Below, one piece after another: positions 1,869 through 63,234 of a stretch of DNA of 64,000 bases (position 1 is the stretch's first letter; the number at the start of each line of letters is the position of its first letter). Origin of the DNA: Bugula neritina. Taxonomy: Eukaryota > Animalia > Bryozoa. The notes beneath the pieces were generated by a model that saw only the letters and a list, made by a program, of their open reading frames with translations, was not told the origin of the DNA and searched no databases. Where the stretch lies: assembly GCA_964035545.1 (NCBI GenBank), contig OZ037771.1, forward strand, positions 11,722,480 to 11,786,479, in the 5' to 3' direction. Made by a program: the position numbers and the translations under genes.

Positions 1869-4800
1869 CCAAAGCAGCAAAGATGTTTATTTTTATTTGA
1901 TTGGTCAACAAAAGATGATTAGTAATTTTAGTTTTATATAGAATTTTTGAAAGTTTTCTGATAAGACATAGAAATTGTCAAGGTTTCTATATAAACTATA
2001 TTACACTGCACTACTTCAATCAGCTGTGAAGACATTATAATTCTAGCTATAATTCACTGAATTTGATGCTTTTTTTAAGGATTATATAAATATGTCCTTG
2101 GTAATTTAACACTCTATTTTATCTGATATTTTTATATTATAAATAAATGCGTAAATTATACTGTATATACTGCTAGCATAAAATGAGTTTCCTGTTTATT
2201 CTTAAAATACCCTGTTGCCTTACACTATATTCAACAGCTTTTAACTACTAAATCTTAGCAAAAGACTTAGAAACCTCTGTAAAGATATCAGAGTTAGTAA
2301 TAGAACCCTATTAATCTTTCAGATGATTATGTAGAGATTAAAGGTTTTCTATACTAACTCTATATTGGCAAAAGCAACGGTTCTCAAAGAATTATTGAAA
2401 ACAATTTTACTTTTGTAAATATACGTCTTTATTGTCTTTTTTTACAACTTGTTACATTGTGTCAGTTATTTGTAAAAAAATATAAAAAACTATATTTTTG
2501 ATATTACTTCCCCACCATAATTTAAACTGCATTACTCTGCCACACAGTAGAACCTTGCAAAAGCTGGTCTTTCCAAACTGCATGCATTACAATAAGTTGA
2601 TGAAACAAGATAAACCTTATCTTGTTGTACAATTGCTGCTTGTCTGTAAAACGTAGCTGCAATAGAATAGTAGTCCTTCCTTTCTCTAAACTTCCCGTTA
2701 GGTTATAAAACAGCCTTTCTCTACTGCACCTCTTTGATATTCCAAATTTATTAAACAAATTTCAATAATCAACGTGTTGCACTTTTCAAAGCTTATAACT
2801 TAAATTACTTGTCAACACTTTGCGCCTATTATAGGAAAAATTTGAAGAATGACATTGAAAAATGCACTAGCTAATGATGCATCTTGCACTAAATTCTGTC
2901 AAATTATTTATGCAAATAATATTTTGGAAAATACATGAACATTTACCAAGGCAAAATGTGCATTGTTGAAGAACTATTTTAATATTTAAGCCCACTTGTA
3001 AGTCAATAAGCTCAATTTTATAATTATAAGTTGTTTTGAGGCTCTATGTTTTGCAGAAAATTGAATCTACACCAACCCAGTAAAAATTTACAAAACTCTC
3101 TCAATTAGTATCCTGAAAACCGATGAGCTTAAACGTATACCGGTTATAGTTGCTGGAAACCTACAACATAAATCTATCCTAAAATCTAGTAGTTAATTTG
3201 CCTATAAGTAGCAAATGCTTAATAACAGTGACATAGCGTAGTACCTTTAGAATCTAGATGTCACCAACTCTTACAATGTAAACTGGATAAGTCTTTAACA
3301 AACTTACAGCTTTTTAATTTTAAAAATCCATGAATTATATTCTTGCACAGAAAACCTCCTCAAAACTATTTGAAGCCTAATCAAGCCACCTTAAAAGTAC
3401 AACAAAAATATAGCTTGCTTAATTAAAACTTTGTAACTAGCCTTGTATTATCTATGCTAACATTAAAAAGCACAGTCCTTCAGGTTAGCTTGCAAAACTA
3501 GGTTCTATAAGCATTTATCTACGTCATAATAATATGCAGCACATTTTACAAAACACATTTAGGGTTGTCTCACTATCTAAAAACTGAGGATAGAATGATA
3601 TTATAGTCAAATATTCTCATGCAATGACATGACCATAAATAAACAAGTTTGAATTTCTTATAAGCAAGCTTCAAGTTAATTTTATTTGCAAACTATAAAG
3701 TGGACACCAAAATGTTTGTAACTGGAAGATTGTCAAGTCAGACTTTGGTTATTGTACCCCTAATTACAGCATTACTAAATACCCCTTTACCCTACCTTTT
3801 AGCTGAGAACTGACTGTGTGTCCATTGTTACAGTGTACCTAATTTTAGTGCTGGCATTTCATTTTTGCTTGTGTTGGTTCTCTGCTTTTCTCACTCCTGC
3901 TGTTTTCTTGAGAGTAAAAGCAAATGTTCCTTTCTCCAAAGCTCACTGCTACATAATGAAAGGTTGTAACAAATAGCCCAGACCTACTCTGTACCATAAC
4001 TCTGAGAGATTATACAGTAGCCTTGGTGTAATGAGGTGCCTCTGAAATGTTATAATAAATAGCCCGGTGTTTTAGTTTAAAGAAACACGAGAAAGCTATA
4101 ATAATACCACATCCGTTCATTCAAACACTGCCTGTGCAGATGTGTCCACTGAGATCAGTCCTGAAACATCAAATTATAATATTTATAGAGAATTCACAGC
4201 TGATTTCATTGCTTTATTTTTGATTTTCTTTTTAAATGATTCTGGGAAAGTATTATTATTGCCATTACTTTGAATAACACTCAGTAATTCAGGATACTAA
4301 CAAATCTAGTAAAATAACTAAATAAACACCCAAACAAATGAAATATTATATAGAGGCGATACAATACAATGTAATGTACAGCTAATTGGTCTAAACTCTA
4401 AAGCAAAATTTTAAAATATATTTTTAATTTATTTTATAATGACATATTAGTCTAAATGGAGTCTTTTAATAAATTAAGTGGTAATCATTTTTACGGTATA
4501 GACTTACACTGATTGTATTTTATTTGATCAAAAAAGTAAGGAGTTTTTACATGAATTTAGTAATTGCGAAATGAATTAAATAGCTTAACGCTAAATGTTA
4601 GCAAAATTCCAAATTGCAGTAACTCAAAAATTTATGCAAGGGATTGTGTTGGAAAAGCCAGTTTTATCTATTAATCATATTTAGAGCTGAATATAGTAAT
4701 TTTGTTTTTATAACTTAGGTATTTTTGTAGTATATGGTGTAATTCAAATGACAATTTGTTTCAGTTAAGCACCATTAGATGTTATTTATTTTATTGAAAT

Positions 4801-6834
4801 GCTGAAGACAGTTTTAGTTATTCTCAATCAGTCCAATCAGAAATTCTTTTTTCAAAATGCAGTCAAAACACTGTCAATGAAGTGCATTCTATTTTTAACG
4901 CAAAATAATATTAGCTCAGTGGCTTAGCAAACAGTTTGAACCATATAACAAATCCCATTATATATTTTTCTGTTAGCTACTAAACTGCCATGTGAAAACA
5001 ATAATCACTTATATAAGGTCAACTGTAGATGTGACATGTTAACAATTTTTAACTTTTGTCAAAAATAATGTTCACCAATACTGATAATAAATATGACTTT
5101 AAAACTCTTAAGCATTATAATCATTTGGGGTACCATGCATATTTCATAAAGCACAGAATGGTTGCATCACCACTTTTCTCTGGGTCCTGTGTTTCTAAGT
5201 ACAACATGTAATGTTTGTTTAAAAATGAAAGTAGGGATGAAGTTTGCTAAGCTTTACATAACCAGGTTCCCATAAGTAATAATTAGATTGGGTACAAACT
5301 GAAAGTTTGTGTACTTTGTAATTTCACTATCCTATAATTAAAGGTTTCCTTAAAACTGTTTCTCTTGCCATGCATGTCTGTCAGACAGGTTTTAGCTAGA
5401 AATCAAACATTAGACTTTTATCGCCCAAAACTAGCTCAGCTGGCTCTCTGGTCACAAGGTAAATTATAGTTATAAGTTCTACAGGTAATCCTTTAAATAG
5501 GGGGCTTTTAATAAAGGTAAACTATTTGCAAACAGTTATTAACAAAGAAAGAAGTGAAAATGGCTGAAGAATTTTACGAGTAAAGACTACCACTAAATAT
5601 TTGAGAAAGTATTATACTAGGCTAACTAATTTCTTCTGCCACAGACCCTTGAACTCAACCTAGCTGCTCTCAAGTTACTGTAATATGAAATAAAAAATTA
5701 AATATAACTCTCCTACATAAAATCATTTAAAATTCTATATATTAACCAATATAGATATGACAAGCTTATCTCCAGGCAGCTAATTATAGCATAGCTCTAA
5801 CTAAAGACAAATTACATCAAATTCATTTCTATATGATGAGGTTTTGTAGGATTTTTACTAATAGAATTACAAAACTAAAAAATAGGAAAATAGATGAAGT
5901 AAAATTTGATTTAATCATCGTAGAGATCTTTACTGTTTTCAATTCTAAAACAAATAATTTATAATTTAACTAAATGCATTAATTCATAAAGTCCCTCTTA
6001 TAAAACTACTTAGGTACTCATGGTGTGATATGAATCATGTTGCCATTCTATACACTGAACAAACAACTACAGTCAAAACTAGTTTAAAATTCATGAAAAT
6101 TATTTGTTTTAAGCGTGTAACAATGGACAGCATGAGATAATTTTAATAAAACTGTGTCCTTTTTAGCACAAACACAATCAAAAGATGTGTAGTAGAGAAA
6201 TTTGTGAAAGCTAACGCTGCTTATGATCTTGCTATACCAGATAAAACCTTAGTAATATTTGTTTTTGATAATTGAATAATTGAAATCTGTGTAAATGTTA
6301 GTAGATTATAATATTTTATAGAATATAACTTTTGAAAATGTACTCACTGACTATCTTTGAATAATTATATTTATAAACCTGATGCTAAAATTATAATTGA
6401 AACCTGTGTATTTGAACTACAAAATCAGCATATAATGTAAAAAATATATCTTGAAACTAAAGTTATTTGATGTTTTGCTTTTTATTTATTACTACTCTAT
6501 TATCGTTAGGAGAAAATATACATATTAGCAGCAAGAGTTTACTTGAGAAAAATAAGGAGGCTCATAGTATGCTAAATTAATTTACCTGGCCCTATTTCTA
6601 GATTGTATCATATAATGAAAGAACTGGTAACGGAAGCATGGAAAACTATTATTAGTTAGTAAAGCAGCAGTAGCTGTCATAAACACTTTAGGCAGTCAAA
6701 AGCAAATATATTATTAAAGCTTTTGTCTTCATCAGCTTTCATGTTATAAGTTATCCCTATCCAGTTTCATTTTCTAAGAAGTGCTCACGTAGTTTTCAAG
6801 GACAAAACTCACATTTGACCTAAAAGAAATAAAA

Positions 6835-6975
6835 CCAATGGATTGCTTTTGCAGAGGAGTCAACTGGGCGTGAACATTCTATCTGGTGGTTCAGCGTCCA
6901 ATCACAAGTCATCTGAGTGGTTGCCCTTTTCCCAGACCAATATAAAGAGCTGCACTTCCAGGGAATCTCAGTGTC
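6835..6975 (+). promoter_or_regulatory. Pol II core promoter, unit 1 (CCAAT boxes, TATA, TCAGT initiator)
   Basis: CCAAT at ~6836, ~6898 and ~6937; TATAAAG at 6941; TCAGT at 6968-6972, with the A 29 nt after the TATA T. This is canonical spacing and is conserved in all three units. Confidence 0.7.
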
Positions 6976-9900
6976 GACCAAGCACCAACAACACCAGAAG
7001 AAGACCTGGAGATGAAACACTTGGACTCTTAATTACTTTGACACATAAAGCAAATCTCAACTGGTTGGGTTTGCAGAAGAATGAAAGATACCGGTAAAGA
7101 ACTATACAAGAACTGCTAAAGAAGAGTTGAACAAGAAATGAAATATACGTTTCAAATCTTAGTCAGGTAATCAACATCACTAACTACTTTCTCTTTATTA
7201 TATCTGCTTCAGAATTTGGTCTTGCTAGCTTCAAACACTCCTATATTTAAACTGGCACATAAATAACTTTACACCATTATTCTAGTTAACATAGAAGAAC
7301 TTCAATCTCTTCTGATAGTAAGGGTTGGGGTAGTTCTATACTAACTGTATTCTGTATATTCTCCAATAGTTTATCTTATCTGCAAACAGAAAACTCATTG
7401 AAAATATTTTAGCTGACAGAAATTATTTTGCATTTTTGCTAACATACAAAGTGTAAGGTGCTCTCTACACCAGCTTCATATTGCTTCATCATAGAACACA
7501 ACTCTACTCTAGTGACAACAACAATATTTTAGTTAACATAAAATAACGTTAGTTTTGTATGATATAATGCATGGAGTTGGGGTGGTTCTATATTAACTGT
7601 ATATTTTACATTCTCCAATATTTTATGTTCATATCTACAAACAGAAAACTCATTGAAAATATTTTAGCTGGCATAGAAATCATCTTACATTTTTTGCTAA
7701 CATACAAAGTGTAAGGTGCTTTCTATACCAGCTCTGTATTCCTTCTTTCATCTGGAACACAACTCTATATTTTAGTGACAACAACAATATTCTAGTTAGC
7801 ATAGAACAACTTTAATCTTGTCTGACAGAAAGTACAAGGTGAGGGTTGTTCTGTACTAACTGTATATTTTGTATTCTCCATCTATATATTCCTTCACCAG
7901 GGAACAGAACTCCAATTTCTAGTTAGAGCAATAGTCTTCTAGTTAACATAGACTTGATCGTGTCTGTCATAAGTCTTTCCAAATAGTTGTGTTAATAATC
8001 TTTTTTTTTTAATTTCAATAGAACTTCATGACTTTCATATCTTCAAAGATCTACTAACAGGAGTAAATTTAAAATATTTTAGCTGGCATAGAAGTCATTT
8101 AACATTTTTTTGCTAACATACAAAAGTGTAAGATGATTTCTATACCAGCTTTATGTTTCTTTGTCAAGGAACACAACTCTATACTCTAGTATCAACAGTA
8201 TATTCTAGTTAAAATAGAACAACTTTAATTCCATATAATATAATGCATGGAGTTGGAGTGATTCTGTACTAATTGTATATTTTGTATCCTCAGTATGACA
8301 GAGCACTGGGTTGGAGTGGTTCTGTAATAACTGTACGTTTTACGTCTACAATTATCACAGCCTATACAAGTATGGCTTTATGAAATATTTTTAATGTCAA
8401 TAGCTTTGAAGACTTTCCAATCTCAATCTTTAAAAATCTACCAACAGAAATCCAATTAAGCTATTTTAGCTGGCATAGAAATAGCTTTGCATTTTTTGTT
8501 GATATACAAAGTGTAAAGTGCTTTCCATACAAGGTTTATGTTCCTTTGTCAGGGAACAGAACTCTACTCTAGTGAGAAACAATATTCTGGTTAGCATAGA
8601 CTTACTTTTACCATGTCTTGTATAATGCACAAGGTGAGAGTTGTTCTATACTAACTGTATCTTATATCCTCAGTTTGATAGAAAGCTCTGAGTTTGGGTA
8701 GTTCTATACTAACTGCATATTTGATGTTTACAATTATCCCAGTCTACCAATATTACTTTATAAAACATTTTCAACTTCTAGTGATATAAGCAACAATATA
8801 CTCTATTCAACATAGAACAACTTCAATTTCATATGGTATAATGCATGGAGTTTGAATAGTTTTAAAGTAAATGTATATATTTTATGACAGAAGCAATATT
8901 CCAGTTACCATAGAACAACTTTTATCCAGTCTGATATATGGCACTGGGTTGGGGTAGTTCTATTGTAACTGTATATTTATTTTATGTCTTCCATTGTCAA
9001 AGCTAATCAATATTGTTTCACCAATTTTTGTTCAAATTTACTAAATATTTTGTACCTTCATATCCTGAAAGGTTCTGCAAACAGAAAGTGATAATTAAAA
9101 CATTTTAGCTGGCATAGAAATCATTTTATACTTTTTGCTAGCATACAAAGTGTAAGGTGCTTTCTATACCAGCTTTCATTTCCTTCATCAGGAAACATAA
9201 CTCTGTATTCTAGTGACAGCAACAATATTCTAGTTAGCATAGAATAACTTTAATCTTGTCTGACAGAAAGTTCAAGGTGAGGGTTGTTCTATACTAACTG
9301 TATATTTTGTATTCTCCATCTATATATTCCTCCATCACGGAACACAACTCCAATTTTTAATTAGAGCAACAGTCTTCTAGTTAACATAGACTTGATCTTG
9401 TCTGTCATAAGTCTTTCCAAATAGTTGTTAATAATTATTATTTTTAATTTCAATAGAACCTCATGACTTACATATCTTCAAAGATCTACCAACAGGAGTA
9501 AATTTGAAATATTTTTAATGTTAATAGCTTTGGAGACTTTCCAATCTCAATCTTTAAAAATCTACCAACAGAAATCCAATTAAACTATTTTAGCTGGCAT
9601 AGAAATCATTTTACATTTTTTGTTATCATATGAAGTGTAAGGTGCTTTCTGTACCAGCTTTTTATTCCTTCATCAGGGAACACAACTCTATACTCCAGTC
9701 ACAACAATATTCTAGTTAACATAGAATAACTTTAATCTTGTCTGATTAAAAGCACAAGGTGAGGGTTAGTCTATACTAACTGTATATTTTTTATTCTCCA
9801 TTTTAAAAATCTCTCAATGTAATTGGTTGTATGACAAGAGAAATTATACAGATGCTGTCTTGGTCATCATCAAAATTAGTAAGAAATCTACAAATAGCAT

Positions 9901-10150
9901 AGTTTTGAATCTAATTCCATATAATATAATACATGGAAGTTGGATCAATCTTGACTATAGCTGTATATTTTATCTAGATCTGCACTTAACAAAGCCTGCC
10001 AATATGTTTTAATTTTTAGTAAACATTGTGATTTTCGATTAGTCAAATATTCTGTGGACTCATTGATCATATTTAGCAGGCATAGAAGCCATTATAAATT
10101 TCCATATGATATAATGCATGTAGTTGGGGTGGTTCTATACTAACTGTATA
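6970..10150 (+). ncRNA. Candidate pri-miRNA host, unit 1: non-coding exon 6970-7166 then ~17 pre-miRNA-like hairpins
   Basis: Donor CAG|GTAATC at 7166. Family A hairpins, e.g. 9107-9174 (AGCTGGCATAGAAATCATTTTATACTTT...AAAGTGTAAGGTGCTTTCTATACCAGCT). Family B hairpins, e.g. 7793-7862 (TAGTTAGCATAGAACAACTTTAATCTTGT...ACAAGGTGAGGGTTGTTCTGTACTAACTG). Many stem mismatches are G:U on +. Confidence 0.65.
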
Positions 10151-10222
10151 TATTTTATATTCTCCAATATTTCATGTTCATATCTACAAACAGAAAACTC
10201 ATTGAAAATATTTTAGCTGGCA

Positions 10223-10356
10223 TCCTTCAGCTATTCCATATTTATGTTTGTGAGTTTCGAAAAGGTTTATAAGAGCTGCAACATATCTAGTGTGAAGTTC
10301 ATTGATCTCTTCAGATGTTGGGGTATCGTTCTGGTCTACTTCTATTGGTGAACCAA
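10223..10356 (-). pseudogene. Duplicated, truncated MOGAT last exon (dead copy)
   Basis: Translates (V)GSPIEVDQNDTPTSEEINELHTRYVAALINLFETHKHKYGIAEG, then is fused to array sequence. The acceptor AG is mutated to AC (10357-10358). Confidence 0.85.
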
Positions 10357-12310
10357 GTAAAAACAAGAGCTGAAAGGTTTATATTGTATTACCCATCACT
10401 TTCAAAAACACTGTGATAACATTAAGATGTAAATACCAATCTACTCTCCAGTCTTCATTATTGTATGTTTCGCAGTATATTACAAGCAGTCTCATGGCTA
10501 CATAATGAAAGGTTGTCACAAAAAGCTCAGACCTACTCTGTACCATGGTGCTAAAGGATTATACAATAGCCTTGGTGTAATAAGGTGCCACTGAAATATT
10601 ATAATAAATAGCCAAGTGTTTTAGTTTAATGAAACAAAAAAAAATAATAATACCATATCTGTTCATCCTAACACTGCCTGGGCAAATGTGTCCACTAAGA
10701 TCAGTCCTGAAACACTAAATTGTAGAAAGTTCACTGCTGATCTTTTTGCTCTATTTCTGATTTTATTTTTAAATGATTCTGGGAAAGTATTATTATTGCC
10801 ATTACATTGAATAACACTCAGTAATTCTGAATACTAACAATTCTAGTAAAAAAACTAAATAAACACCCAAACAGATGAAATATTATATAGATATGATACA
10901 ATACAATGTAATGTACAGCTAATTAGTCTAAACTCTAAAGCAAAATTTTAAAATATCTTTTAAATTTATTTTATGATGACATATTAGTTCAAATGGAGTG
11001 TTTTAATAAATTAAGTTGTTATCATTTTACGGTATGGACTTATACTGATTGTATTTTATTTGATCGAAAAAAGTGAGGAGTTTTTACATGAATATAGTAA
11101 TTGCGAAATGAATTAAATAGCTTAGCGCTAAATGTTAGCAAAATTGCAAATTGCAGTGACTCAATAATTTATGCAAGGGATTGTGTTGGAAAAGCCAGTT
11201 TTATCTATTAATCCTATTTTATAGCTGAATATAGTTATTTTGTTTTTATAACTTAGGTATTTTTGCAGAACGTGGTGTAATTTAAATGGCAATTTGTTTT
11301 AGTTAAGCACTATTAGATGTTATTTATTTAATTAAAATTCTAAATTCTAAAACAAATATCTTATAAAACTAAAAGCATTAATTCATAAAGTCCTTCTTAT
11401 AAAAATACTTAGATACTCATGCTGTTATATGAATCATGTTGCCATTCTATACACTGAACAAACAACAACTAAAGTTAAAATTAGTTGAAAATTCAAAAAA
11501 TTATTTGTTTTAAGCGTGTAAAAATTGACAGCATGAGAGAATTTTAATTAATACTGTGTCTTTTTTAACGGAAACACAATTAAAAGATGTGTAGTAAAGA
11601 AATTTTAACTAACTATTTGTGAAAGCTAACGCTGCTTATGATCTTGCTATACCAGATAAAACATTGGTATTATTTGTTTTTGATAATTGAATAATTGAAA
11701 TCTGTGTAACTGTTAGTAGATTATAATATTTTATAGAATATCACTTTTAAAAATGTACTCACTGACTATTTTTGAATGATTATATTTATAAACCTGATGC
11801 TAAAATTATAATTGAAACCTGTGTACTTGAACTACAAAACCAGCATATAATGTAGAAAATAGAACTTGAAACTGAGGCTGTGAGATGTTTTGCTTTTTAT
11901 ATATTACTACTCTATTATCGTTAGGAGGAAATATACATATTAGCAGCAAGAGTTTACTTGAGAAAAATAAGGAGGCTCATAGTATGCTAAATTAATTTAC
12001 CTGGCCCATATTGTAAACTGTGTGTCACTATGTAGCAAATTTGTGAGAAATGCTACTGAGAAGTTCCTAGGGTTACTTGAGCTCTTATTTCTGGACTGAA
12101 TAATATAATGAAAGAACTGGTAAAGGAAGCATGGAAAACTATTATTAGTTAGTAAAGCAGCAGTAGCTGTCAAAGCGAAAGCAAATATATTATTAAAGCT
12201 TTTGTTTTTATCAGCTTTCATGTTAGTTATCCCTATCCAGTTTCATTTTCTAAGAAGTGCTGATGTTGTTTGCAAGGACAAAACTCACATTTGACCTAAA
12301 AAAAATAAAA

Positions 12311-12450
12311 CCAATGGATTGCTTTTGTAGAGGAGTCAACTGGGCGTGAACATTATATTTGGTGGTTCAGCGTCCAATCACAAGTCACCTGAGTGGTTGC
12401 CCTTTTCCCAGACCAATATAAAGAGCTGCACTTCCAGGGAATCTCAGTGT
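12311..12450 (+). promoter_or_regulatory. Pol II core promoter, unit 2
   Basis: TATAAAG at 12417, TCAGT at 12444-12448, upstream CCAAT boxes; paralogous to unit 1. Confidence 0.7.
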
Positions 12451-15400
12451 CAACCAAGCACCAACATCAGAAGAAGACCTGGAGATGTAACACTTGGACT
12501 CTTAATCACTTTGACACATAAAGAAAATCTCAACTGGTTGGGTTTGCAGAAGAATGAAAGATACTGGTAAAGAACTATACAAGAACTGCTAAAGAAGAGT
12601 TGAACAAGAAATGAAATATACGTTTCAAATCTTAGTCAGGTAATCAACATCACTAACTACTTTCTCTTTATTATATCTGCTTCAGAATTTGGTCTTGCTA
12701 TCTTCAAACACTCCTATATTTAAACTGGCACATAAATAACTTTACACCATTATTCTAGTTAACATAGAAGAACTTCAATCTCTTCTGATAGTAAGGGTTG
12801 GGGTAGTTCTATACTAACTGTATTCTGTATATTATCCAATAGTTTATCTTATCTGCAAACAAAAACTCATTGAAAATATTTTAGCTGGCATAGAAATCAT
12901 TTTGCATTTTTTGCTAACATACAAAGTGTAAGGTGTTTTCTATACCAGCTCTGTATTCCTTCTTTCACCTGGAACACAACTCTATATTTTAGTGACAACA
13001 ACAATATTCTAGTTGGCATAGAACAACTTTAATCTTGTCTGACAGAAAGTTCAAGGTGAGGGTTGTTCTATACTAACTGTATATTTTGTATTCTTTATCT
13101 ATATATTCTTTCATCAGGGAACACAACTCCAATTTCTAATTAGAGCAACAGTCTTCTAGTTAACATAGACTTGATCTTGTCTGTCATAAGTCTTTCCAAA
13201 TAGTTGTTAATAATTATTATTTTTAATTTCAATAGAACCTCATGACTTTCATATCTTCAAAGATCTACCAACAGGAGTAAATTTAAAATATTTTAGCTAG
13301 CATAGAAGTCATTTAACATTTTTTTGCTAACATACAAAAGTGTAAGATGATTTCTATACCAGCTTTATGTTTCTTTGTCGGGGAACACAATTCTATACTC
13401 TAGTATCAACAGTATATTCTAGTTAACATAGAACAACTTTAATTCCATATAATATAATGCATGGAGTTGAAGTGATTCTATACTAATTGTATATTTTGTA
13501 TCCTCAGTATGACATAGAGCACTGGGTTGGGGTGGTTCTGTAATACCTGTACGTTTTAAGTCTACAATTATCACAGCCTATACAAGTATGGCTTTATGAA
13601 ATATTTTTAATGTTAATAGCTTTGTAGACTTTCCAATCTCAATCTTTAAAAATCTACCAACAGAAATCCACTTAAACTATTTTAGCTGGCATAGAAATAG
13701 CTTTACATTTTTTGTTGGTATACAAAGTGTAAGGTGCTTTCCATACAAGCTTTATGTTCCTTTGTCAGGGAACAGAACTCTACTCTAGTGAGAAACAATA
13801 TTCTAGTTAGCATAGACTTACTTTTACCATGTCTTGTATAATGCACAAGTTGAGAGTTGTTCTATACTAACTGTATCCTATATCCTCAGTTTGATAAAAA
13901 GCTCTGAGTTGGGGTAGTTCTATACTAACTGTATATTTCCCAGTCTACCAAAATTGCTTTATAAAACATTTTCAACTTCTAGTGATATAAGCAACAATAT
14001 ATATTCTATTTAACATAGAACAACTTCAGTTTCATATGGTATAATGCATGGAGTTTATATAGTTTTATAGTAAATGTATATTTTAAGAAAGAAACAATAT
14101 TCCAGTTAACATAGAACAACTTCTTTCCAGTCTGATATATAGCACTGGGTTGGGGTAGTTCTATATTAACTGTATATTTATTTTATGTCTTCCATTGTCA
14201 AAGCTCATCAATATTGTTTCACAAATTTTGTTCAAATTTACTAAATATTTTGTACCTTCATATCCTGAAAGGTTCTGCAAACAGAAAGTCATTATTAAAA
14301 CATTTTAGCTGGCATAGAAATCATTTTATACTTTTTGCTAGCATACAAAGTGTAAGGTGCTTTCTATACCAGCTTTCTATTCCATCATCAGGGAACATAA
14401 CTCTGTATTCTAGTAACAGCAACAATATTCTAGTTAGCATAGAATAACTTTAGTCTTGTCTGACAGAAAGCACAAGGTTAAGGTTGTTCTATACTAACTG
14501 TGTATTTTATGTCCTCTGTATCCTCAGTCAGCACTGCAAACGATAATTCATTTAAACTATTTTAGCTGGCATAGAAATAATTTTACATTTTTTGTTATCA
14601 TATGAAGTGTAAGGTGCTTTCTATACCAGCTTTATATTCCTTCATCAGGGAACACAACTCTATACTCTAGTCACAACAATATTCCAATTAACATAGACTT
14701 ACTTTAATCTTGTCTGATATCTAAAGCACAAGGTGAGGGTAATTCTATACTAATTGTATATTTTATGTCTACTGTTATCCCAGTCTAAGAATATTGCTTA
14801 ACAAAACAAATTTAATTTTAGTAAAGCTTTATGACTATCATATTTTTAAAGTTCTGTAACCAACAACTATTCATTTGAATAATTTTACGTATTTTGCTAA
14901 CATACAAAGTGTAAGGTGCTTTCCATACCAGCTCTATATTCCCTCATCAGGGAACAAAACTCTATTCTAGCACCATCATATCTTGAAATGTTCTGCAAAC
15001 TGAAATTCATTTAAACTATTTTAGCTGCCATACAAGGTGCTTTTTATACTAGCTTTATATTCCTTCATCAGGGAACACAACTCTATATTCTAGTGACAGC
15101 AATAATAGTTTAGTTAACATGAAACAAACATAATTCTACATGATATAAAGCAAGGGTTGGGGTGATTCTATACTAACTCTATATATTGTATGTCCTTGTC
15201 AATATTGCTTTACAAAATTTTTCCTAAATTATTCAAACATTACCAAAGCCTTTGCACTTTTATATCCTAAAATGCTCTGCAACTAGAAAGCATTGAAAGT
15301 GATTTAGCTGGCATAGAAATAATTTATTACTTTTCTCCCCCATACAAGGTGTAAAGCTCCAATACCATCTTTATATTCCTTCATCAGAAAACACAACTCC

Positions 15401-17070
15401 AGTTTTTAGTTACAGCAACAAAAAAATTTAGTCAAAGTGGAACAACTTTTACCCAGCAAAGATATATTATATCATTTGGGTCTTTCCTTATTAACTCTAT
15501 TATGTTATACCTAAAATTATCTCGACCTACCAATATTGCTTTATAAAAGATTTTCAAGTAAAGCTTTATGGCAATCATACCTTCAAAGATCTACCAACAA
15601 CCGTTCATTTGAAATATTATTTTAGCTGGCATAAAATTCATTTTACATTTTTGCTAACATACAAAGTGTAAGGTGCTTTCTGTACCAGCTTTATATTTCT
15701 CTATCAAGAAACACAACTGCTTATTTTAATGACAGCAAAAACTGTTTAGTTAACATACACCAGGAACTTTATATGTATGTTGTTTTATCAGGGGACACAG
15801 CTCTTTATTCTAGTGACAACAATGTTCTAGTTAGCATAGAACAACTTCTATCCAGTCTAATATAGAGCACTGAGTTGGGGTAGTTCTATATTAACTGTAT
15901 ATTTTATGTCTGCAATTATCCTAGCCTACCAAGTATTTTCAACTTCTAGTGATAGCAACAATATTCTAGTTAACATAGAATAACTTTAATCTTGTCTGAT
16001 CAAAAGCACAAGGTGAGGGTTAGTCTATACTAACTGTTTATTTTTTATTCTCCATTTTCACAACCCCTCAATGAAATTAGTTGTATGACAGAAGAAATTA
16101 TACAGATGCTGTCTTGGTGGCATAGTTTTGAATCTAATCCATATAGTATAATACATGAAGTTGGATAAATCTTGACTATGGCTGGCTGTGTATTTTATCT
16201 CGATATATGCATTTAACAAAGCCTCTCAATATGTTTTAAGTTTTAGTAAAGATTGTGATTTTCAATTAGTTAAATATTCTGTGGACAGAACAACTCATTG
16301 AAAATATTTAGCAGGCATAGAAATAATTTTAAATTTCCATATGATATAATGCATGTAGTTGGGGTGGTTCTATACTAACTGTATATATTTTATATTCTCC
16401 AATATTTTATGTTCATATCTACAAACAGAAAACTCATTAAAAATATTTTAGCTGGCATGGAAACAATCTGGTATTTTTTGCAAACCTACAAAATGTAAGG
16501 TGCTTTTTATACCAGCTTTATATTCGCTCATCAGGGAACACAACCCTATATTCTAGTCACAACAATATTCCAGTTAACATAGACTTACTTTAATCTTGTC
16601 TGATATCTAAAGCACAAGGTGAGGGTAATTCTATACTAACTGTATATTTTATGTCTAATATTATCCCTGCCTACCAATATTGCTTAACAAAAAAATTTCA
16701 GTTTTAGTAAAGCTTTATGACTATCATATCTTCAAAGATCTGCAACCAACAACTGTTCTTTGGAAATAATTTTCTATTTTATGCTAACATACAAAGTGTG
16801 AAGTGCATTCTATACCAGCTTTATATTCCTTCATCAGGGAACACAACTTTATATTCTAGTTACAGCAACAATATATTCTAGTTAACATAGAACAACTTTA
16901 ATCTTGTCTGACAGAAAGTACAAGGTGAGGGTTGTTCTATACTAACTGTATATTTTGTATTCTTCATCTATATATTCCTTCATTAGGGAACACAACTCCA
17001 ATTTTTAGTTAGAAAAACCTCTATCCAGTCTGATATATTGCATTGGGTTGTGGTGGTTCTATTGTAACTG
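12446..17070 (+). ncRNA. Candidate pri-miRNA host, unit 2: non-coding exon 12446-12639 then ~22 hairpins
   Basis: Donor at 12639. Alternating family A/B hairpins, e.g. 14103-14172 CAGTTAACATAGAACAACTTCTTTCCAGT-loop-ACTGGGTTGGGGTAGTTCTATATTAACTG. Confidence 0.65.
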
Positions 17071-17875
17071 TATATATATTTTATGTTTTCCATTGTCAAA
17101 GCTAATCAATATTGCTTTCCAAAAATGATGTCTTTGATATTTTACAAAAAGGTCGGAAATGGCTATATCTCAACTATTATTCTGGGCAAACAAACTAATA
17201 ACAGTGATCAGGGTGCAATGGTTAGGTGGCCCATTGTGCCCAGTGTGGCCAAGTTGAAAATAAATGTGGTTCAAGGAAAATTTATTTTAGAGTTTGCTAT
17301 TATACTAGTTGAGCAATGTAGAGACAAGCAATGGCAACAATATCAGTAGAACCTAAGCTTGTTAGCTTTGAGTGCAACAAGTTATAAAGCTTTTATGACA
17401 TGTACAAAAAGTAGGCAAAAACAGTTTTTGACTCGCCTCTTCAACATGTATGCTCTGCAAGTGTTGAAACTACAATGGTTGAATAATTACGTCATTGCCT
17501 TTTTATTAAAGAAAAATTACAAATCTAAGTCACTAAGTTCTCTCACAATTTAACTGGCTTTTTGTACCCCTATGACAGTTGTGCCACTCCCCCCTCTGTT
17601 ACCCCTATATGTCTGGTATTAGAATATCCTCATACATAAGCTATTGTAAATTAAACTGTGATTACCAAAATACTTGTATAATTGAGTAACAACACCATTA
17701 TTTTTATGGTGTTGATACAAACATGATATATTGCTGCATATTTAAATTTTGATTTCTAACAAAATCAATACATTATTTCATAATTAATAATATTAAACTG
17801 GCTTAAAAAGTCTCTAAGTTTAGCATTTTTTTGAATTCTCAATAGGAATTCATTATTCAAAGCAGTATCGTTTTC

Positions 17876-18030
17876 TTAAAACAAGTTCAAGTGGGTTCCT
17901 TTAGCTACTTCATATTTTTGTTTGTGAGTTTCAAAGAGGTCTATGAAAGCTGCAACATATCTAGTGTGAGGTTCATTGATCTCTTCAGATGTTGGGGTAT
18001 CGTGCTGGTCTACTTCTATTGGTGAACCAA
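17876..18030 (-). CDS. Duplicated MOGAT last exon, intact (possible alternative terminal exon)
   Basis: 155 nt like the parent exon, intact TTTTTAG acceptor, open frame (V)GSPIEVDQHDTPTSEEINEPHTRYVAAFIDLFETHKQKYEVAKGTHLNLF*. Homology is certain; use in transcripts is unproven. Confidence 0.5.
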
Positions 18031-20477
18031 CTAAAAACAAGAGCTGAAAGGTTTATATTGTATTACCCATCACTTTCAAAAACACTGGGATAATATTAAG
18101 ATGTAAATACCAATCTACTCTCCAGTTTTCATTATTGTATGTTTCACAGTATATTACAAGCAGTCTCATGCCTACATTATGAAAGGTTGTTACAAAAAGC
18201 CCAGACCTTCTCTGTACCAGGGTGCTAAAAGATTATGCAATAGCCTTGGTGTAACGAGGTGCCACTGAAATATTATAATAAATAGCCAGGTGTTTAATGA
18301 AACACACAAAAATAATAATACCATATCTGTTCATTCAAACACTGCCTGGGCAGATGTGTCCACTGAGATCAGTCCTGAAACACTAAATTATAGAAAGTTT
18401 ACAGCTGATTTTATTGCTTTATTTCTGATTTTATTTTTAAATGATTCTGGGAAAGTATTATTATTGCCATTAGCAAACAGTTTGAATCATATAACAATTC
18501 CCATTATATATTTTTCTGTTAGCTACTAAACTGCCATATGAAAACAATGATGACTTATATAAGGTCAACTGTAGGTGTGATATGTTAACGACTTTTAACT
18601 TTTGCTAAAAATAATGTTCACCAATCTTAATAATAAATATAAAACTTTAAAACTCTTAAGCATTATAATCATTTATAGGGCACCATGCATATTTCATAAA
18701 GCACAAAGTGGTTGCATCTCTGTTTTCTGCCATTTTTCTCTGGGACCTGTGTTTCTACATATAAGCACAACAGGTAATGTTTGTTTGAAAATGAAAGTAG
18801 GGATGACATTTACTATGCTTTACATAATCAGGTTCCCATAAGTAATAATTAGATTGGGTACAAACTGAAAGTTTATGTACTTAGTAATTTCACTATCTTA
18901 TAATTAAGGGTTTCCTTAAAACTGTTGCTCCTGCCAGGCACATCTGTCAGACAGGTTTTAGCTAGAAATCCAACATTAGACTTTTATTGCCCAAAACTAG
19001 CTCAGCTGGCTTTCTGGTCACAAGGTAAATTATAGTTATAAGTTCTACAGGTAATTCTTTAAATAGGGGGCTTTTAATAAAGGTAAACTATTTGCAAACA
19101 GTTATTAACAAAGAAAGAAGTGAAAATGGCTGAAGAATTTTACGAATAAAGACTACCACTAAATATTTGAGAAAGTATTATACTAGGCTAACTAATTTTT
19201 TCTGCCACAGACCCTTGAACTCAACCTAGCTGCTCTCAAGTTACTGCAATATGAAATAAAAAATTAAATATAACTCTCCTACATAAATTCATTTAAAATT
19301 CTATATATTAACCAATATAGATATGACAAGCTTATCTCCAGGCAGCTAATTATAGCATAGCTCTAACTAAAGACAAATTACATCAAATTCATTTCTATAT
19401 GATAAGGTTTTGTAGGATTTTTACTAAAAAAACTACAAAACTAAAAAATAGGAAAATAGATGAAGTAAAATTTAATTTAATCATCGTAGAGATCTTTACT
19501 GTTTTCAATTCTAAAACAAATAATTTATAATTTAACTAAATGCATTAATTTATAAAGTCCCTCTTATAAAACTACTTAGGTACTCATGGTGCGATATGAA
19601 TCATGTTGCCATTCTATACACTGAACAAACAACTACAGTCAAAACTAGTTTAAAATTCATGAAAATTATTTGTTTTAAGCGTGTAACAATGGACAGCATG
19701 AGATAATTTTAATAAAACTGTGTCTTTTTTAGCACAAACACAATGAAAAGATGTGTAGTGGAGAAATTTGTGAAAGCTAACGCTGCTTATGGTCTTGCTA
19801 TACCAGATAAAACCTTGGTAATATTTGTTTTTGATAATTGAATAATTGAAATCTGTGTAACTGTTGGTAGATTATAATATTTTATAGAATATAACTTTTG
19901 AAAATGTACTCACTGACTATCTTTGAATAATTATATTTATAAACCTGATGCTAAAATTATAATTGAAACCTGTGTATTTGGACCACAAAATCAGCATATA
20001 ATGTAGAAAATAAAACTTGAAACTAAAGTTATTTGATGTTTTGCTTTTTATTTATTACTACTCTATTATCGTTAGGAGAAAATATACATATTAGCAGCAA
20101 GAGTTTACTTGAGAAACATTAAGGAGGCTCATAGTATGCTAAATTAATTTACCTGGCCCATATTGTAAAGTGTGTATCATTATGTAGCAAATTTGTGAGA
20201 AATGCTACTGAGAAGTTCCTAGGGTTAGTAGAGCTCTTATTTCTGGATTGAATAATATAATGAAAGAACTGGTAAAGAGAGCTTGGAAAACTATTATTAG
20301 TTAGCAAGGCAGCAGTACCTGCCATAAACACACCAGGTAGTCAAAAGCAAATGTATTATCAAAGCTTTCAGCTTCATCAGCTTTCATGTTATAAGTTATC
20401 CCTATCTAGTTTCATTTTCTAAGAAGTGCTTATGTTGTTTTCAAGGACAAAACTGTGTTTGACCTAAAAAAATAAAA

Positions 20478-20617
20478 CCAATAGATTGCTTTTGCAGAGG
20501 AGTCAACTGGGCGTGAACATTCTATTTGGTGGTTCAGCGTCCAATCACAAGTCATCTGAGTGGTTGCCTTTTTCCCAGACCTATATAAAGAGCTGCACTT
20601 CCAGGGAATCTCAGTGT
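20478..20617 (+). promoter_or_regulatory. Pol II core promoter, unit 3
   Basis: TATATAAAG at 20582-20590, TCAGT at 20611-20615, upstream CCAAT boxes; paralogous to unit 1. Confidence 0.7.
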
Positions 20618-23600
20618 CAACCAAACACCAACATCAGAAGAAGATCTGGAGATGTCACACTTGGAATCTTAATCACTTTGACACATAAAGCAAATCTCAA
20701 CTGGTTGAGTTTGCAGAAGAATGAAAGCTACTGGTAATGAACTATACAAGAACTGCTAAAGAAGAGTTGAACAAGAAATGAAATACGTTTCAAATCTTAG
20801 TCAGGTAATCAACATCACTAACTACTTCCTCTTTATTATATCTGCTTCAGAATTTGGTCTTGCTATCTTCAAACACTCCTTTATTTAAACTGGCATATAA
20901 AAAACCTCAAACCATTAGTGACTCAACAATATTCTAGTTAACATAGAAGAACTTCAATCTCTTCTGATATGAAGGGTTGGGGTAGTTCTATACTAACTGT
21001 ATTCTGTATATTCTCCAATAGTTTATCTTATCTGCAAACAGAAAACTCATTGAAAATATTTTAGCTGACATAGAAATCATTTTGCATTTTTTGCTAACAT
21101 ACAAAGTGTAAGGTGCCTTCTATACCAGCTTTCTATTCCTTCATCAGGGAACATAACTCTGTATTCTAGTGACAGCAACAATATTCTAGTTAGCATAGAA
21201 TAACTTTAATCTTGTCTGACAGAAAGTACAAGGTGAGGGTTGTTCTACACTAACTGTATTTTATGTCCCCTGTATCCTCAGTCAGCACTAGGTTGGGGTG
21301 GCTCTCTACTGTATATTTTATGTTTACAACTTTTAAAGTTTGTCAATATTGCTTTACAAATCTGTTTCTATTTTATTAAAGCTTTTGCACCTTCATATCT
21401 TGAAATGTTCTGAAAACTGAAATTCATTAAAAATATTTTAGCTGGCATACAAGGTGCTTTCTATACCAGCTTAATATTCCTTTATCAGGGAACACAACTC
21501 TATACTCTAGTCACAACAATATACCAGTTAACATAGACTTACTTCAATCTTGTCTGCTATCTAAAGCACAAGGTGAGAGTTATTCTATACTAACTGTATA
21601 AAAATCATTTCATACTTTTTGCCTACATACAAAGTGTATAAGGTGCTTTTTATACCAGCCTTACACTCGTTCATCAGGGAACACAACTCAAAATTACAAG
21701 AAAAATATTCTAGTTAGCATAGAATAACTTTAATCTTGTCTGACAGAAAGCACAAGGTTAAGGTTTTTCTATACTAGCTGTGTATTTTATGTCCTCTGTA
21801 TCCTCAGTCAGCACCGCAGACGAAGATTCATTTAAACTATTTTAGCTGGCATAGAAATCATTTTACATTTTTTGTTATCATATGAAGTGTAAAGTGCTTT
21901 CTATACCAGCTTTATATTCCTTCATCAGGGAACACAACTCTATACTCTAGTCACAACAATATTCCAATTAACATAGACTTACTTTAATCTTGTCTGATAT
22001 CTAAAGCACAAGGTGAGGGTAATTCTATACTAATTGTATATTTTATGTGTACTGTTATCCCAGTCTAGGAATATATATATTGCTTAACAAAAAAATTTCA
22101 GTTAACATAGCTTTTGCATTTTCATATCTTAAAATGCTCTGCAACCAGAAAGCATTGAAAGTGATTTAGCTGGCACAGAAATAATATTTTTCTCCCCCCC
22201 CCTCATACAAGGTGTAATGCTCTAATACCATCTTTATATTCCTTCATTAGAGAACACAACTCCAGTTTTTAGCTACAGCAAAAAATTCTTAGTCAAAGTG
22301 GAACAACTTTTACCCAGCAAAGATATATAGCATTTGTTTGGGTCTTTCCTCGTTAACTCTATGTTATACCTACAATTATCTCAGCCTACCAATATCGTTT
22401 TATAAAATATTTTCAAGTAGAGCTTTATGGCTATCATACCTTCAAGGATCTACCAACAATTGTTCATTCAAAATATTATTTTAGCTGGCATAAAATTCAT
22501 TTTACATTTTTTGCTAACATACAAAGTGTAAAATGCTTTCTATACCAGCTTTATATTCCTTCATCAGGGAACACAACTGCTTATTTTAATGACAACAAAA
22601 ACTGTTTAGTTAACATACACCAGGAGCTTTATATGCATGTTGTTTTATCAGGGGACACAACTCTTTATTCTAGTGCTAGTGACAACAATATTCTAGTTAG
22701 CATAGAACAATTTCTATCCAGTCTGATACAGAGCACTGGGTTGGGGTGGTTCTATATTAACTGTATATATTATGTCTGCAATTACCCTAGCCTACCAAGT
22801 ATTTTCAACTTCTAGTGACTACAACAACAATATTCTAGTTAACATAGAACAACTTTAATCTTGTCTGACAGAAAGTACAAGGTGAGGGTTGTTCTATACT
22901 AGCTGTATATTTTGTATTATCCATATATATACTCTTTCATCAGGGAACACAACTCAAAATTACACCAAAAATACTCTAGTTAACATAGAACAACTTCTAT
23001 CCAGTCTAATACAGAGCACTGGGTTGGGGTAGTTCTATATTAATTGTATATTTTATGTCTGCAATTACCCCAGCCTACCAAGTATTTTCAACTTCTAGTG
23101 ATAGCAACAATATTCTAGTTAACATAGAATAACTTTAATCTTGTCTGATTAAAAGTACAAGGTGAGGGTTGTTCTGTACTAACTGTGTATTTTTTATTCT
23201 TCATTTTCAAAACCTCGCAATGTAATTGGTTGTATGACAGAAGAAATTATACAGATGCTGTCTTGGTCATCATAAAAACTAGTAAGACATCGATAAGTGG
23301 CATAGTTTTGAATCTAATCCATATAATATAATACATGGAAGTTGGATAAATCTTGACTGGCTGTTATATATTTTATCTCGATATGCAAAGCCTATCAATA
23401 TGTTTTAAGTTTTAGTAAAGATTGTGATTTTCAATTAGTTAAATAGTCTGTGGACAGAATAACTCATTGATAATATTTAGCAGGCATAGAAATCATTTTA
23501 AATTTCCATATGATATAATGCATGGAGTTGGGGTGGTTCTATACCAACTGTATATATTTTATATTCTCCAATATTTTATGTTCACATCTACAAACAGAAA

Positions 23601-24245
23601 ACTCATTAAAAATATTTTAGCTGGCATGGATACAATCTGGTATTTCTTGCAAACCTACAAAATGTGAGGTGCTTTCTATACCAGTTTTATATTCCTTCAT
23701 CAGACAACACAACTCTATATTGTAGTCACAACAATATTCCAGTTAACATAGACTTACTTTAATCTTGTCTGATATCTAAAGCACAAGGTGAGGGGAATTC
23801 TATACTAACTGTATATTTTATGTCTACTGTTATCCCAGCCTACCTATATTGCTTAACAAAAAATTTTAATTTTACTAAAGCTTTATGAGTATCATATCTT
23901 TAAAGATCTGCAACCAACAACTGTTCATTTGAAATATTTTTCTATTTTATGCTAACATACAACGTGTAAAATGCTTTCCATACCAGCTCTATATTCCTTC
24001 AACAGGGAACACAACTTTATATTCTAGTTACAGCAACAATATATTCTAGTTAACATAGAACAACTTTAATCTTGTCTGACAGAAAGTACAAGGTGAGGGT
24101 TATTCTATACTAACTGTAATATAATCCTTCATTAGGGAACACAACTCCAATTTTTAGTTAGAGCAACAGTCTTCCAGTTAACATAGAAAAACCTCTATCC
24201 AGTCTGATATATTGCATTGGGTTGTGGTGGTTCTATTGTAACTGT
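20613..24245 (+). ncRNA. Candidate pri-miRNA host, unit 3: non-coding exon 20613-20804 then ~20 hairpins
   Basis: Donor at 20804. The same hairpin families run from ~20934 to ~24245. Confidence 0.65.
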
Positions 24246-25010
24246 ATATATATTATGTTTTCCATTGTCAAAGCTAATCAATATTGCTTTACAAATGATG
24301 TCTGATATTTTTCAAAAATGTCCGAAAGGGCTATATCTATAGATTTTATTAACATCTCAACTATTATTCTGAGCAAACAAACTAATAACAGTGATCAGGG
24401 TGCAATGGTCAGGTGGCCCATTGTGCCCAGTGTGGCCAAGTTGAAAATAAATGTGGTTCAAGGAAAATTTATTTTAGAGTTTGCCATTATACTAGTTAAA
24501 CAATGTAGAGACAAGCAATGGCAACAATATCAGTAGAACCTAGGCTTGTTACCTTTGAGTGCAACAAGTTAAAAAACTTTTATGACATGTACAAAAAGTA
24601 GGCAAAAACAGTTTTTGACTCCCCTCTTCAACATGTATGCTCTGCAAGTGTTGAAACTACAATGGTTGAATAATTACGTCATTGCCTTTTTATTAAAGAA
24701 AAATCACAACTCTAAGTCAATAGGTTCTCTCACAATTTAACTGGCTTTTTGTACCCCTATGGCAGTTGTGCCACTCCCCCATCACCCCCCTCTGTTACCC
24801 CTATATGTCTGGTATTGGACTATCCTCATACATAAGCTATTGTAAATTAAACTGTGATTACCAAAATACTTGTATAATTGAGTAACAACACCATTATTTT
24901 TATGGTGTTGATACAAACATGATATATTGCTGCATATTTAAATTTTGATTTCTAACAGTATTTTTTTGAATTATCAATATGAATTCATTATTCAAAGCAG
25001 TATCGTTTCC

Positions 25011-51916: not shown

Positions 51917-53770
51917 TGTAATGGATTTGAGTTGTGCAATTAGTAATTAGTTTATATATATATCGAAAGGGTCGACTCTATGTTGTATATTATTGTGGAG
52001 GTCGACTACATCGACTCCCAGCCGACGTACATCTTATGGTCGACAGTGGCATCACTAATACCAGCTATTCAGGAAAGACTGTTAATTGATAGCAGGTGGA
52101 GCTAGCTACGCATAGTGGAAGCACGCTGAGTAGCTAGCCCGGCAGAGCAGCTTGGGAGTTAGCTTAGAGTAGTTGTGTGCAAAGTTCTCAGTGTTATGTA
52201 ATCGTACAATTCATGTTAATAGTAATTCAATTCTTGTATCTTGTAAATAATAAACTTGTTATAACGCAAATAACCTGGTGTAGTACCTTTGTATAGGTTG
52301 ACCCACATAACATAGTGAATTGAGAAATTCACTACAGTAGTGGCAGCGGTGGGATACCACTTAATACAAATGCTCCTAGCCAGGGAGTAGAAAGAAGATG
52401 GCCAACGAGGACGACGCACCCGGACAGGAACCGGTAGCAGTAGAGGAGGATCGCATAGGCGGCCCAGCGCTGCCTATGGACAGGTACCACTTGCGGGCTC
52501 CCATCTTCTCAAGAGAAGAAGATGTGGAGCAATTCATCACTGAGTTTAGTGATGTGGCGGCCATCTGCAGATGGCCGGATAGGGTTACTCTGATCCAGCT
52601 ACGGTTATGTCTGACAGGGTCGGCTAAACCCTATGGGATAAGCTAGAATGTCAGGGACATATTTGAGGCATTGAGAGCTCGATTTGGATTAACCGCTCGA
52701 GAAGCCCGCGTGCAACTCCAGGGGCTTAGGAGAAATCCTAAGACTGACCTGCGAGAGCATGCTACCGTAGTCGAACGACTTGCCTGCTGATAGTCGACAG
52801 AGCTTAGCACTGGATGCATTCTTCCAGTCAATTAACAACCTCGAGTTGAAACAGCATCTGCTGGTGGCCGAGGTTGAGACCAGGGAGAGAGCTCTAAGGC
52901 TTGGAAATACCTATTTTCAAGCCGACAGTGCGTGCCGACCTGGTACGACAATACAGCAAGTCGGAGCAGACGACGACGTGTCGACGTCGCCAGCGAAGAC
53001 AGCTGTACATGTCGCCACGGCAGCAGCCGACGAGCCGACTAGCTTGACCACAAGCTTGGTTCGAGAGTTACTAGCTGAGATCAGGCAATTACGCCAACAG
53101 TCGACAGCCAAGCGACCTCGAGGGTCGTCGACAGCTGTCGATGACATGCGCCGCCCGGTATGCTGGGGCTGTGGTAGTGGCAGGCACTTCATGCGAAGTT
53201 GCCATCACGGTAGAGGGAGGCAGTTAAACGGCAACGGCCCACAATAACTTCTGCCAACCGTGGGCCCCAGTTTAACCCTCCAAGGCAGAGGCCAAGGCCC
53301 AAACCCCACCGGGTGAGGAGGCCGCCTTCGCCAGAGTGTATATAGCAGCTATTTTTTCCCCGGCAAGCTTGCCGGCAAAATTGTCACATTCCTGTTGAAT
53401 ACTGGGTGTACCACAAACCTACTGAGTCGGCGTCTATTCGACACTCTCAGTGCCAGGGACAGGGCTAGCCTAGAACCATATGAAGAGGAGCACGACACGT
53501 TGGCGGACGGGTCGTGTATTCTTTTCTATGGGGTAATCCAGTTGACTGGTAGAGTCCGTGATCAGACAATCAGCGAGACCTTCATCGTCAGTCAACTCAA
53601 GGAGGACGCCATCTTGGGCATGTCATTTCTGAAGCGACACAGGTGCTACATTGACTTTAACAAGTCGGCGGTGGTGATGGCCGGACGTGAGCTGGCCTGT
53701 GTCGACCGATTTAGCCGACCCTTGGTGGGGGGAGTGCAGGTGGTACAGCGCTGTACTGTTCCTTGGCGCT
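51917..53770 (+). mobile_element. 3'-truncated Ty3/Gypsy LTR retrotransposon (5' LTR, PBS, gag, protease)
   Basis: LTR 51917-52336 (TG...CA). PBS TAGTGGCAGCGGTGGGAT at 52338-52355 is complementary to a tRNA-Leu 3' end. Gag starts at 52398 with a stop, a frameshift and the zinc knuckle CWGCGSGRHFMRSC. The aspartic protease has DTG mutated to NTG and ILGMSFL. No RT is present. Confidence 0.9.

Positions 53771-54703: not shown

Positions 54704-58596
<3,893 letters not shown>

Positions 58597-59354: not shown

Positions 59355-59460
<106 letters not shown>

Positions 59461-63098: not shown

Positions 63099-63234
<136 letters not shown>

Follow-up and report, generated by a model that had tools for sequence, protein, structure and literature searches.

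What is encoded by the tandem array of hairpins on chromosome 7 of the bryozoan Bugula neritina, and which part of these hairpins has selection preserved? The array lies in a stretch of 64,000 nucleotides (the window; contig OZ037771.1, positions 11,722,480 to 11,786,479 of the forward strand), which has the composition of AT-rich animal DNA with about 31% G+C. The original prediction placed microRNA-like hairpins at 7283-17070 and proposed that joint changes of both arms next to the loop diversify the seed of the 3p product. This span proved too short. The array extends from 7270 to 24252 and contains about 55 related units of ∼78 nt, all on the plus strand and grouped in three blocks. From the sequence evidence, the window probably holds most of a lineage-specific, tandemly amplified and undescribed polycistronic cluster of microRNA-type hairpins.

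Structure, covariation and strand of the hairpins

The three blocks and a representative unit have the following window coordinates.

7270..10154, plus strand: block I, about 16 folded units with families A and B alternating (anchors, folds, hits of covariance model R1 at 52-101 bits)
12743..17078, plus strand: block II, about 21 folded units, with decayed copies at 13472, 13854, 14857 and 16744 (folds, R1)
20922..24252, plus strand: block III, about 17 folded units (folds, R1)
7657..7734, plus strand: representative family A hairpin, UAGCUGGCAUAGAAAUCAUCUUACAUUUU / AAAGUGUAAGGUGCUUUCUAUACCAGCU (-31.8 kcal/mol, z = -7.1)

Each intact unit folds into a single long hairpin with a stem of about 35 bp and a loop of 10-14 nt, and the folding energy ranges from -21 to -33 kcal/mol (94 nt). 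When compared with dinucleotide shuffles, eight of nine tested plus-strand units gave z-scores of -4.4 to -7.1; the hairpin of type B4 was the weakest of the types (z = -2.0). Two families alternate along the array, with consensus arms UAGCUGGCAUAGAAAUCAUUUUACAUUUU / AAAGUGUAAGGUGCUUUCUAUACCAGCU for family A and UAGUUAACAUAGAACAACUUUAAUCUUGU / ACAAGGUGAGGGUUGUUCUAUACUAACUG for family B. The core CAUAGAA / UUCUAUAC and the flanks are common to both families, which are therefore clearly homologous, and at least eight sequence types occur among the units. The units were compared with the criteria for a canonical animal microRNA gene (Ambros 2003 / MirGeneDB), according to which at least 16 positions should be paired and the loop should have at least 8 nt. 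In intact units, the predicted 5p/3p duplex pairs about 20 of its 22 positions. The consensus of the array, a stem of ∼35 bp with single-stranded flanks, also has the form of a Microprocessor substrate.

All five arm pairs named in the original prediction were found at or near their expected positions, each beside the loop of a hairpin.

7815..7840, plus strand: type B1 loop-proximal stem, ATCTTGT at 7815 and ACAAGGT at 7834, within unit 7785-7862
14125..14150, plus strand: type B2 loop-proximal stem, TTCCAGT at 14125 and ACTGGGT at 14144
13442..13467, plus strand: type B3 loop-proximal stem, ATTCCAT at 13442 and ATGGAGT at 13461
7305..7326, plus strand: type B4 loop-proximal stem, ATCTCT at 7305 and AGGGTT at 7321, with a shorter loop
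17023..17048, plus strand: type B2' loop-proximal stem, ATCCAGT at 17023 and ATTGGGT at 17042, one G:U replacing G-C

Relative to B1, two pairs are swapped in B2 (U-A to C-G and U-A to A-U) and four in B3. The unit of type B2' (16993-17070) has a whole upper stem and a broken basal 5' arm, and its intact paralogue lies at 24167-24244.

The joint changes were quantified in an alignment of the 54 units of the window (A1). RNAalifold returned 18 consensus pairs, nine of them with compensatory changes. A structure of 35 pairs was taken from the individual folds, and the same pairs with the 3' partner slid by 1-3 columns served as controls. Standard pairs filled 85.5% of the cells, compared with 39-45% when the partners were slid. 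Changes on both sides were observed at 15 of the 35 pairs, with 206 double-change cells against 19-56 in the slid controls. The covariation score was 0.343, at most 0.121 in the slid controls, and none of 500 shuffles reached the observed value. Within family B alone (alignment A4; 40 units, seven of them from the distal array described below), 9 of 32 pairs change on both sides; 68 double-change cells were counted, 38 of which lie in four loop-proximal pairs, against 3-16 after sliding by 1-3 columns.

The covariation also holds after correction for relatedness. A tree was built of 65 distinct units (window units, the distal array, a solo copy and one diverged unit), and the columns were reconstructed by parsimony. 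Same-branch double changes led from one standard pair to another in 12 of 16 cases at true pairs, compared with 4 of 52 at slid pairs (Fisher p = 3e-7; 0-2 such changes per slid control). Single changes that started from a standard pair kept pairing in 100 of 220 cases, above the ∼36% expected from the transition bias in the contigs of a public sequencing run (p = 0.003). Of the 12 compensatory branch events, six fall in the five loop-proximal pairs and six further down, in the middle and basal stem. The covariation expected next to the loop is thus present but not limited to that segment, since the basal and middle stem covary too, mainly between families A and B. The pair counts, the tree-aware count and the family B counts together bear out the claim that the paired double substitutions reflect selection on an RNA hairpin.

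The strand on which this selection acts could be read from the wobble pairs. An A:C on one strand is a G:U on the other, and among paired cells 228 G:U were counted against 47 A:C (binomial p = 1e-29), indicating that selection acts on structure in plus-strand RNA. The plus strand folds better in 47 of the 54 units, and model R1 gives 50-101 bits on the plus strand compared with 16-42 bits on the minus strand; in family A, both strands fold about equally well. A minus-strand transcript as the structured strand is ruled out by the ratio of G:U to A:C and by the R1 scores. A palindrome mechanism at the DNA level alone would not give the strand asymmetry of G:U and of folding. Selection on plus-strand RNA would have preserved the stem while the units diverged, which would account for both the joint arm changes and the predominance of G:U among the wobbles.

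Promoter-like elements and growth of the array

The genome contains exactly four copies of an element of 380 bp; each copy precedes one array and shares its orientation.

6790..7269, plus strand: promoter-like element that precedes block I (two CCAAT boxes, TATAAAG, TCAGT, mini-intron)
12266-12742 and 20435-20921: further copies of the promoter-like element
L031:5690-6225, minus strand: copy before the distal array

All four copies contain two CCAAT boxes, TATAAAG followed by TCAGT some 30 nt later, and a mini-intron of the form GT...ACTAAC...AG (∼65 nt). In the first copy, TATAAAG lies at 6950-6956. Identity among the copies is 82-96%. The distal copy, which is 82% identical, is best conserved in its core promoter part; it has CAA instead of CAG at the acceptor and a 21-nt insertion in the pyrimidine tract. 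This arrangement suggests four transcription units, of which the window contains three and the fourth lies inverted 105 kb upstream; each would start at a copy of the TATA promoter-like element and carry 14-21 same-strand hairpins. About 0.9 kb downstream of the arrays is duplicated as well (17125-18039, 24295-25174, and behind the distal array in L031; 84-91% identity), and this segment may form the 3' portion of the transcription unit. It begins with an ATG open reading frame (ORF) of 88 amino acids at 17083-17349 and of 72 amino acids at 24318-24536. The 88-amino-acid ORF after block II matched no recorded protein.

The B. neritina assembly tzBugNeri2.1 comprises 216.00 Mb in 320 scaffolds and the mitochondrion, with a chromosome 7 of 15.81 Mb (PMC11480708). 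All 216,009,554 bases in 321 pieces, of which the contig of the window makes up 15,813,509, were searched with model R1, for which the best 150 first-look candidates were scored, and with BLAST. Among these 150 candidates and the BLAST matches, copies of the family occur at three places, all on chromosome 7.

11.724-11.747 Mb, plus strand: main array (R1, BLAST)
C7:11,615,412-11,617,699, opposite strand, 105 kb upstream: distal array of 14-15 units
C7:4,218,292: solo copy (R1, BLAST)

The chromosome carries about 70 hairpins of the family in total. Since the copies among the BLAST matches and the 150 scored candidates of model R1 lie at just three sites of a single contig, a dispersed transposon or miniature inverted-repeat transposable element is ruled out. 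A satellite with an internal palindrome was rejected as well: the units are of at least eight types, G:U exceeds A:C as given above, and the arrays are short (2-4 kb), each following a promoter-like element.

Segmental duplication links the blocks, which are 90-93% identical, and the duplicated segments take in the sequence that precedes each of them; the first 1.7 kb of block II is a 93.5% identical duplicate of 7576-9308. The units of the distal and main arrays are not one-to-one orthologues. The array would have grown by duplication of units and blocks, with birth and death of copies. Three further hairpins are found at the left end of the window.

1589-1678, 1913-2006 and 2275-2368, plus strand: three diverged hairpins of the same family (R1 36-48 bits, z -4.4 to -4.8)

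These diverged hairpins keep the ATAGAA/TTCTA(T) core; their upper and partly their basal stems differ yet still pair. A 36-bp tandem repeat at 1650-1868 (6.1 copies, 98% identical) has as its unit the 3' arm of diverged hairpin 1589-1678 together with its flank (CGTAACATGTTCTACACAATCTTTAGGAC...), so that one hairpin arm was amplified alone.

Along the array there are about 18 further units that have decayed, lost a part or become chimeric. Half-units with a deleted basal 5' arm lie at 8256-8333 and 8638-8715 (block I) and at 13472-13549 and 13854-13931 (block II), where the 3' arm plus its upper 5' arm directly follows the 3' flank of the preceding hairpin. Since half-units are present in both duplicated blocks, the deletions are older than the block duplication. 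Units 10069-10146, 16304-16381 and 23473-23550 combine a family-A-like basal 5' arm (UAGCAGGCAUAGAA) with a family-B 3' arm; their basal stem is unpaired and their folds are weak. These chimeric units are probably recombinants.

Recent duplicates differ by 6.6% in their spacers, compared with 4.5% for the 5' arm, 7.3% for the 3' arm and 4.4% for the loop. The 5' arm differs from the 3' arm with p = 0.01 and from the spacers with p = 0.011, in comparisons that overlap and are not fully independent. These values give a weak signal of purifying selection on the 5' arm between recent duplicates.

Predicted processing, arm choice and competing explanations

In Microprocessor substrates, a 13-nt basal ruler and a 22-bp apical ruler set the Drosha cut. 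The basal stem of the array consensus has about 13 nt (AUAU, a small internal loop, U:G and AGUUAG/CUAACU) and is followed by a conserved C:A mismatch and then by 22 bp to the loop. With this geometry the hairpins would be substrates of Drosha/DGCR8 and then of Dicer. We infer that the array is transcribed and processed in this way and that Drosha cuts just before CAUAGAA, at column 33 of A1, on which both rulers agree. A Dicer cut 22 nt further on would release CAUAGAACAACUUUAAUCUUGU as the 5p and AAGGUGAGGGUUGUUCUGUACU as the 3p product of unit 7785. In most units of families A and B, a CNNC motif lies within +13 to +22 from the predicted 3p end; a basal UG at -14 was not found.

In this geometric register, the covarying loop-proximal pairs correspond to nt 19-22 of the predicted 5p and roughly to nt -1 to 3 of the 3p product; the 3p start assumed in the original prediction is two bases further upstream. 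Loop-adjacent changes would therefore affect the predicted 5p at its 3' end and the predicted 3p in its first bases. The proposed identity of the loop-proximal segment with the 5' end of the 3p is plausible but would hold only in part, as the covarying pairs would be shifted and some of them would fall outside the predicted 3p seed. The idea of a seed repertoire on one conserved scaffold fared similarly: a single scaffold is present in all units and the predicted 3p seeds form about six classes in either register, but only 1-3 covarying bases lie in the seed in the geometric register.

The predicted 5p product behaves differently. Its 6-mer AUAGAA is present in 53 of the 70 units, and no other segment of the family varies as little as CATAGAA (predicted 5p nt 1-7). 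No double changes were found in CATAGAA, whereas the flanking pairs have them, which indicates constraint on the sequence and not on pairing alone. The duplex end appears weaker at the 5' end of the predicted 5p (a C:A mismatch, then A-U pairs), and by the usual asymmetry rule this would favour loading of the 5p. If the array is a microRNA cluster, the balance therefore tips modestly towards a constant 5p product with the seed AUAGAA, to which the 3p species would be variable partners. We lean to the 5p because CATAGAA is least variable, lacks double changes and is kept in the diverged hairpins, and because the 5' arm changes more slowly. A dominant, near-invariant 5p, which the original prediction itself had named as the outcome that would contradict it, appears to be the slightly more likely case.

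Several points weigh against a selected microRNA cluster. Between recent duplicates of 90-93% identity, the hairpins are not clearly better kept than the spacers, and the 3' arm changes as fast as the spacers. With about 18 of about 70 units decayed or truncated, much of the array may be drifting. Because the core is paired, its conservation is not assignable to one arm with certainty, and the core could be a processing determinant. All conservation was measured between paralogues within a single genome. One set of sequences supplied both the structure and the tree, and this gives the true register some advantage, although the size of the covariation leaves little doubt about it. Finally, the sole public run found to contain the locus, which is probably from the same species with allelic differences, is not catalogued as RNA and is DNA-like: its contigs cover the promoter, the hairpins, the spacers and a 2.6-kb gap alike at a depth of 60-300. 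Such even coverage of the spacers and the gap marks it as a DNA run that is uninformative on expression.

The closest competitor keeps the microRNA cluster and has the 3p product loaded, so that loop-adjacent compensations would give a repertoire of about six seed classes, possibly selected for a broader target range. That the covarying pairs reach the first bases of the predicted 3p, that its seeds fall into these classes in either register, that half of the tree-aware compensatory events lie in five loop-proximal pairs, and that the 3' arm has an invariant GU at alignment columns 78-79 are all consistent with this possibility. We nevertheless consider it doubtful, as the 3' arm evolves at the rate of the spacers while the 5' arm is slower, the most conserved segment is base-proximal (the predicted 5p seed) and not in the loop-proximal 3' arm, the weaker duplex end favours the 5p, and the covarying bases within the 3p seed number just one to three in the geometric register. 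Diversification of the 3p seed by covariation is thus a possible but less parsimonious reading of the sequences. It is rather unlikely that 3p arms are loaded and new seeds favoured, which would give a diversified, fast-evolving repertoire alongside a constant 5p seed, expressed from four co-regulated promoters.

A more radical departure is an unprocessed, hairpin-forming tandem repeat, in which template switching, gene conversion and unequal crossing-over would produce double changes in one step and without RNA selection. Neighbouring pairs do change jointly (3-4 between B1, B2 and B3), as template switching would give; the chimeric and truncated units speak for frequent recombination, and the hairpins are little better conserved than the spacers between recent duplicates. 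DNA copying, however, should yield Watson-Crick arms equal on both strands, whereas 228 G:U stand against 47 A:C and the plus strand is the stabler one in 47 of 54 units. Such copying would not be expected to conserve internal mismatches or to fix the stem at ∼35 bp; the repeat is moreover confined to four promoter-headed arrays in one orientation, and its single changes keep pairing above expectation. We judge this explanation improbable. Far less probable again is a transcribed array that feeds another small-RNA pathway (hairpin-derived endogenous small interfering RNA or a precursor of PIWI-interacting RNA, piRNA) or acts as a structured long non-coding RNA. Same-strand arrays behind promoters would suit any long precursor, but the size of the hairpins and loops, the mismatches and the unit-by-unit build resemble microRNA precursors, unlike the long stems of hairpin RNAs; piRNA clusters need no hairpins, and a piRNA precursor would leave the covariation unexplained.

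Known clusters and neighbouring features

The family was compared with recorded sequences. No Rfam family reached its gathering score anywhere in the window, and a search of 5-20 kb that admitted E up to 10 gave weak chance matches alone (mir-651, MIR7723 and small nucleolar RNAs), far under the thresholds. In the searched library, no paper matched three core sequences in RNA or DNA spelling, and none on bryozoan microRNAs was found. A scan of metagenomes with a two-arm pattern gave 64 single matches, none of which fits model R1; these are therefore chance matches.

In its organization, the array resembles the mir-430 cluster of zebrafish and other teleosts (mir-427 in Xenopus), which likewise consists of dozens of tandem hairpins on one strand, with two to three sub-families alternating in a higher-order repeat and promoters repeated inside the array, and which is also lineage-restricted and evolves by duplication. 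All mir-430 copies, however, share the 3p seed AAGUGC, whereas the bryozoan units differ in their predicted 3p seeds and have their constant segment in the 5' arm. The family A seed is AAGUGU in the register of the original prediction and GUGUAAG in the geometric one. Membership in mir-430/427/302 (AAGUGC seed) was rejected, with no Rfam hit at the gathering score or with E up to 10. The 3' arm at 14144-14165 and that of other B2/B4 units contains GUUGGGGUAG, and family A starts with AAAGUG. We take GUUGGGGUAG to equal the 3' end of zebrafish miR-430a/b; it occupies another position in the arm and comes without an Rfam mir-430 match, and is presumably a chance likeness.

Other large lineage-specific microRNA clusters are the primate C19MC, the mouse Sfmbt2 mir-297/466/669 cluster, the early-embryo clusters of Tribolium and the octopus-specific families. 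In each of these sets, too, tens of young paralogues have been amplified at a single locus, where copies arise and are lost and the sequence changes rapidly while the hairpin is retained. C19MC and the Sfmbt2 cluster sit in repeats or in the intron of a host gene; the bryozoan arrays, in contrast, each have their own TATA promoter-like element, and their units lack a flanking transposon. No sequence similarity to the C19MC, Sfmbt2, Tribolium or octopus clusters was found in Rfam or in the literature search with the core sequences.

With about 70 hairpins and a repeated promoter of its own, such a cluster would rank among the larger lineage-specific microRNA loci known outside vertebrates and arthropods, and the locus would offer a clean case for the birth, diversification and decay of tandem microRNA genes. 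Its paralogues, at graded divergence, form a within-genome record of compensatory evolution. If both arms were used, the locus would show seed diversification on a fixed processing scaffold. If the hairpins were unprocessed, it would be a warning that strong covariation and a strand-specific G:U excess arose in a repeat.

Elsewhere in the window, a non-LTR (long terminal repeat) retrotransposon lies on the minus strand at 55612-58516, with an Exo_endo_phos_2 endonuclease and an RVT_1 reverse transcriptase in two overlapping ORFs of 662 and 310 amino acids. It is surrounded by long (AT)n microsatellites of 53-68 repeats at 54704-54833, 55284-55389, 59355-59490 and 63100-63235. ORFs at 52780-53247 and 53395-53793, without a Pfam match, lie in an island of 50% G+C at 52000-54000 against a background of 31%. 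A C-rich 7/14-bp repeat at 54245-54289 adjoins this island.

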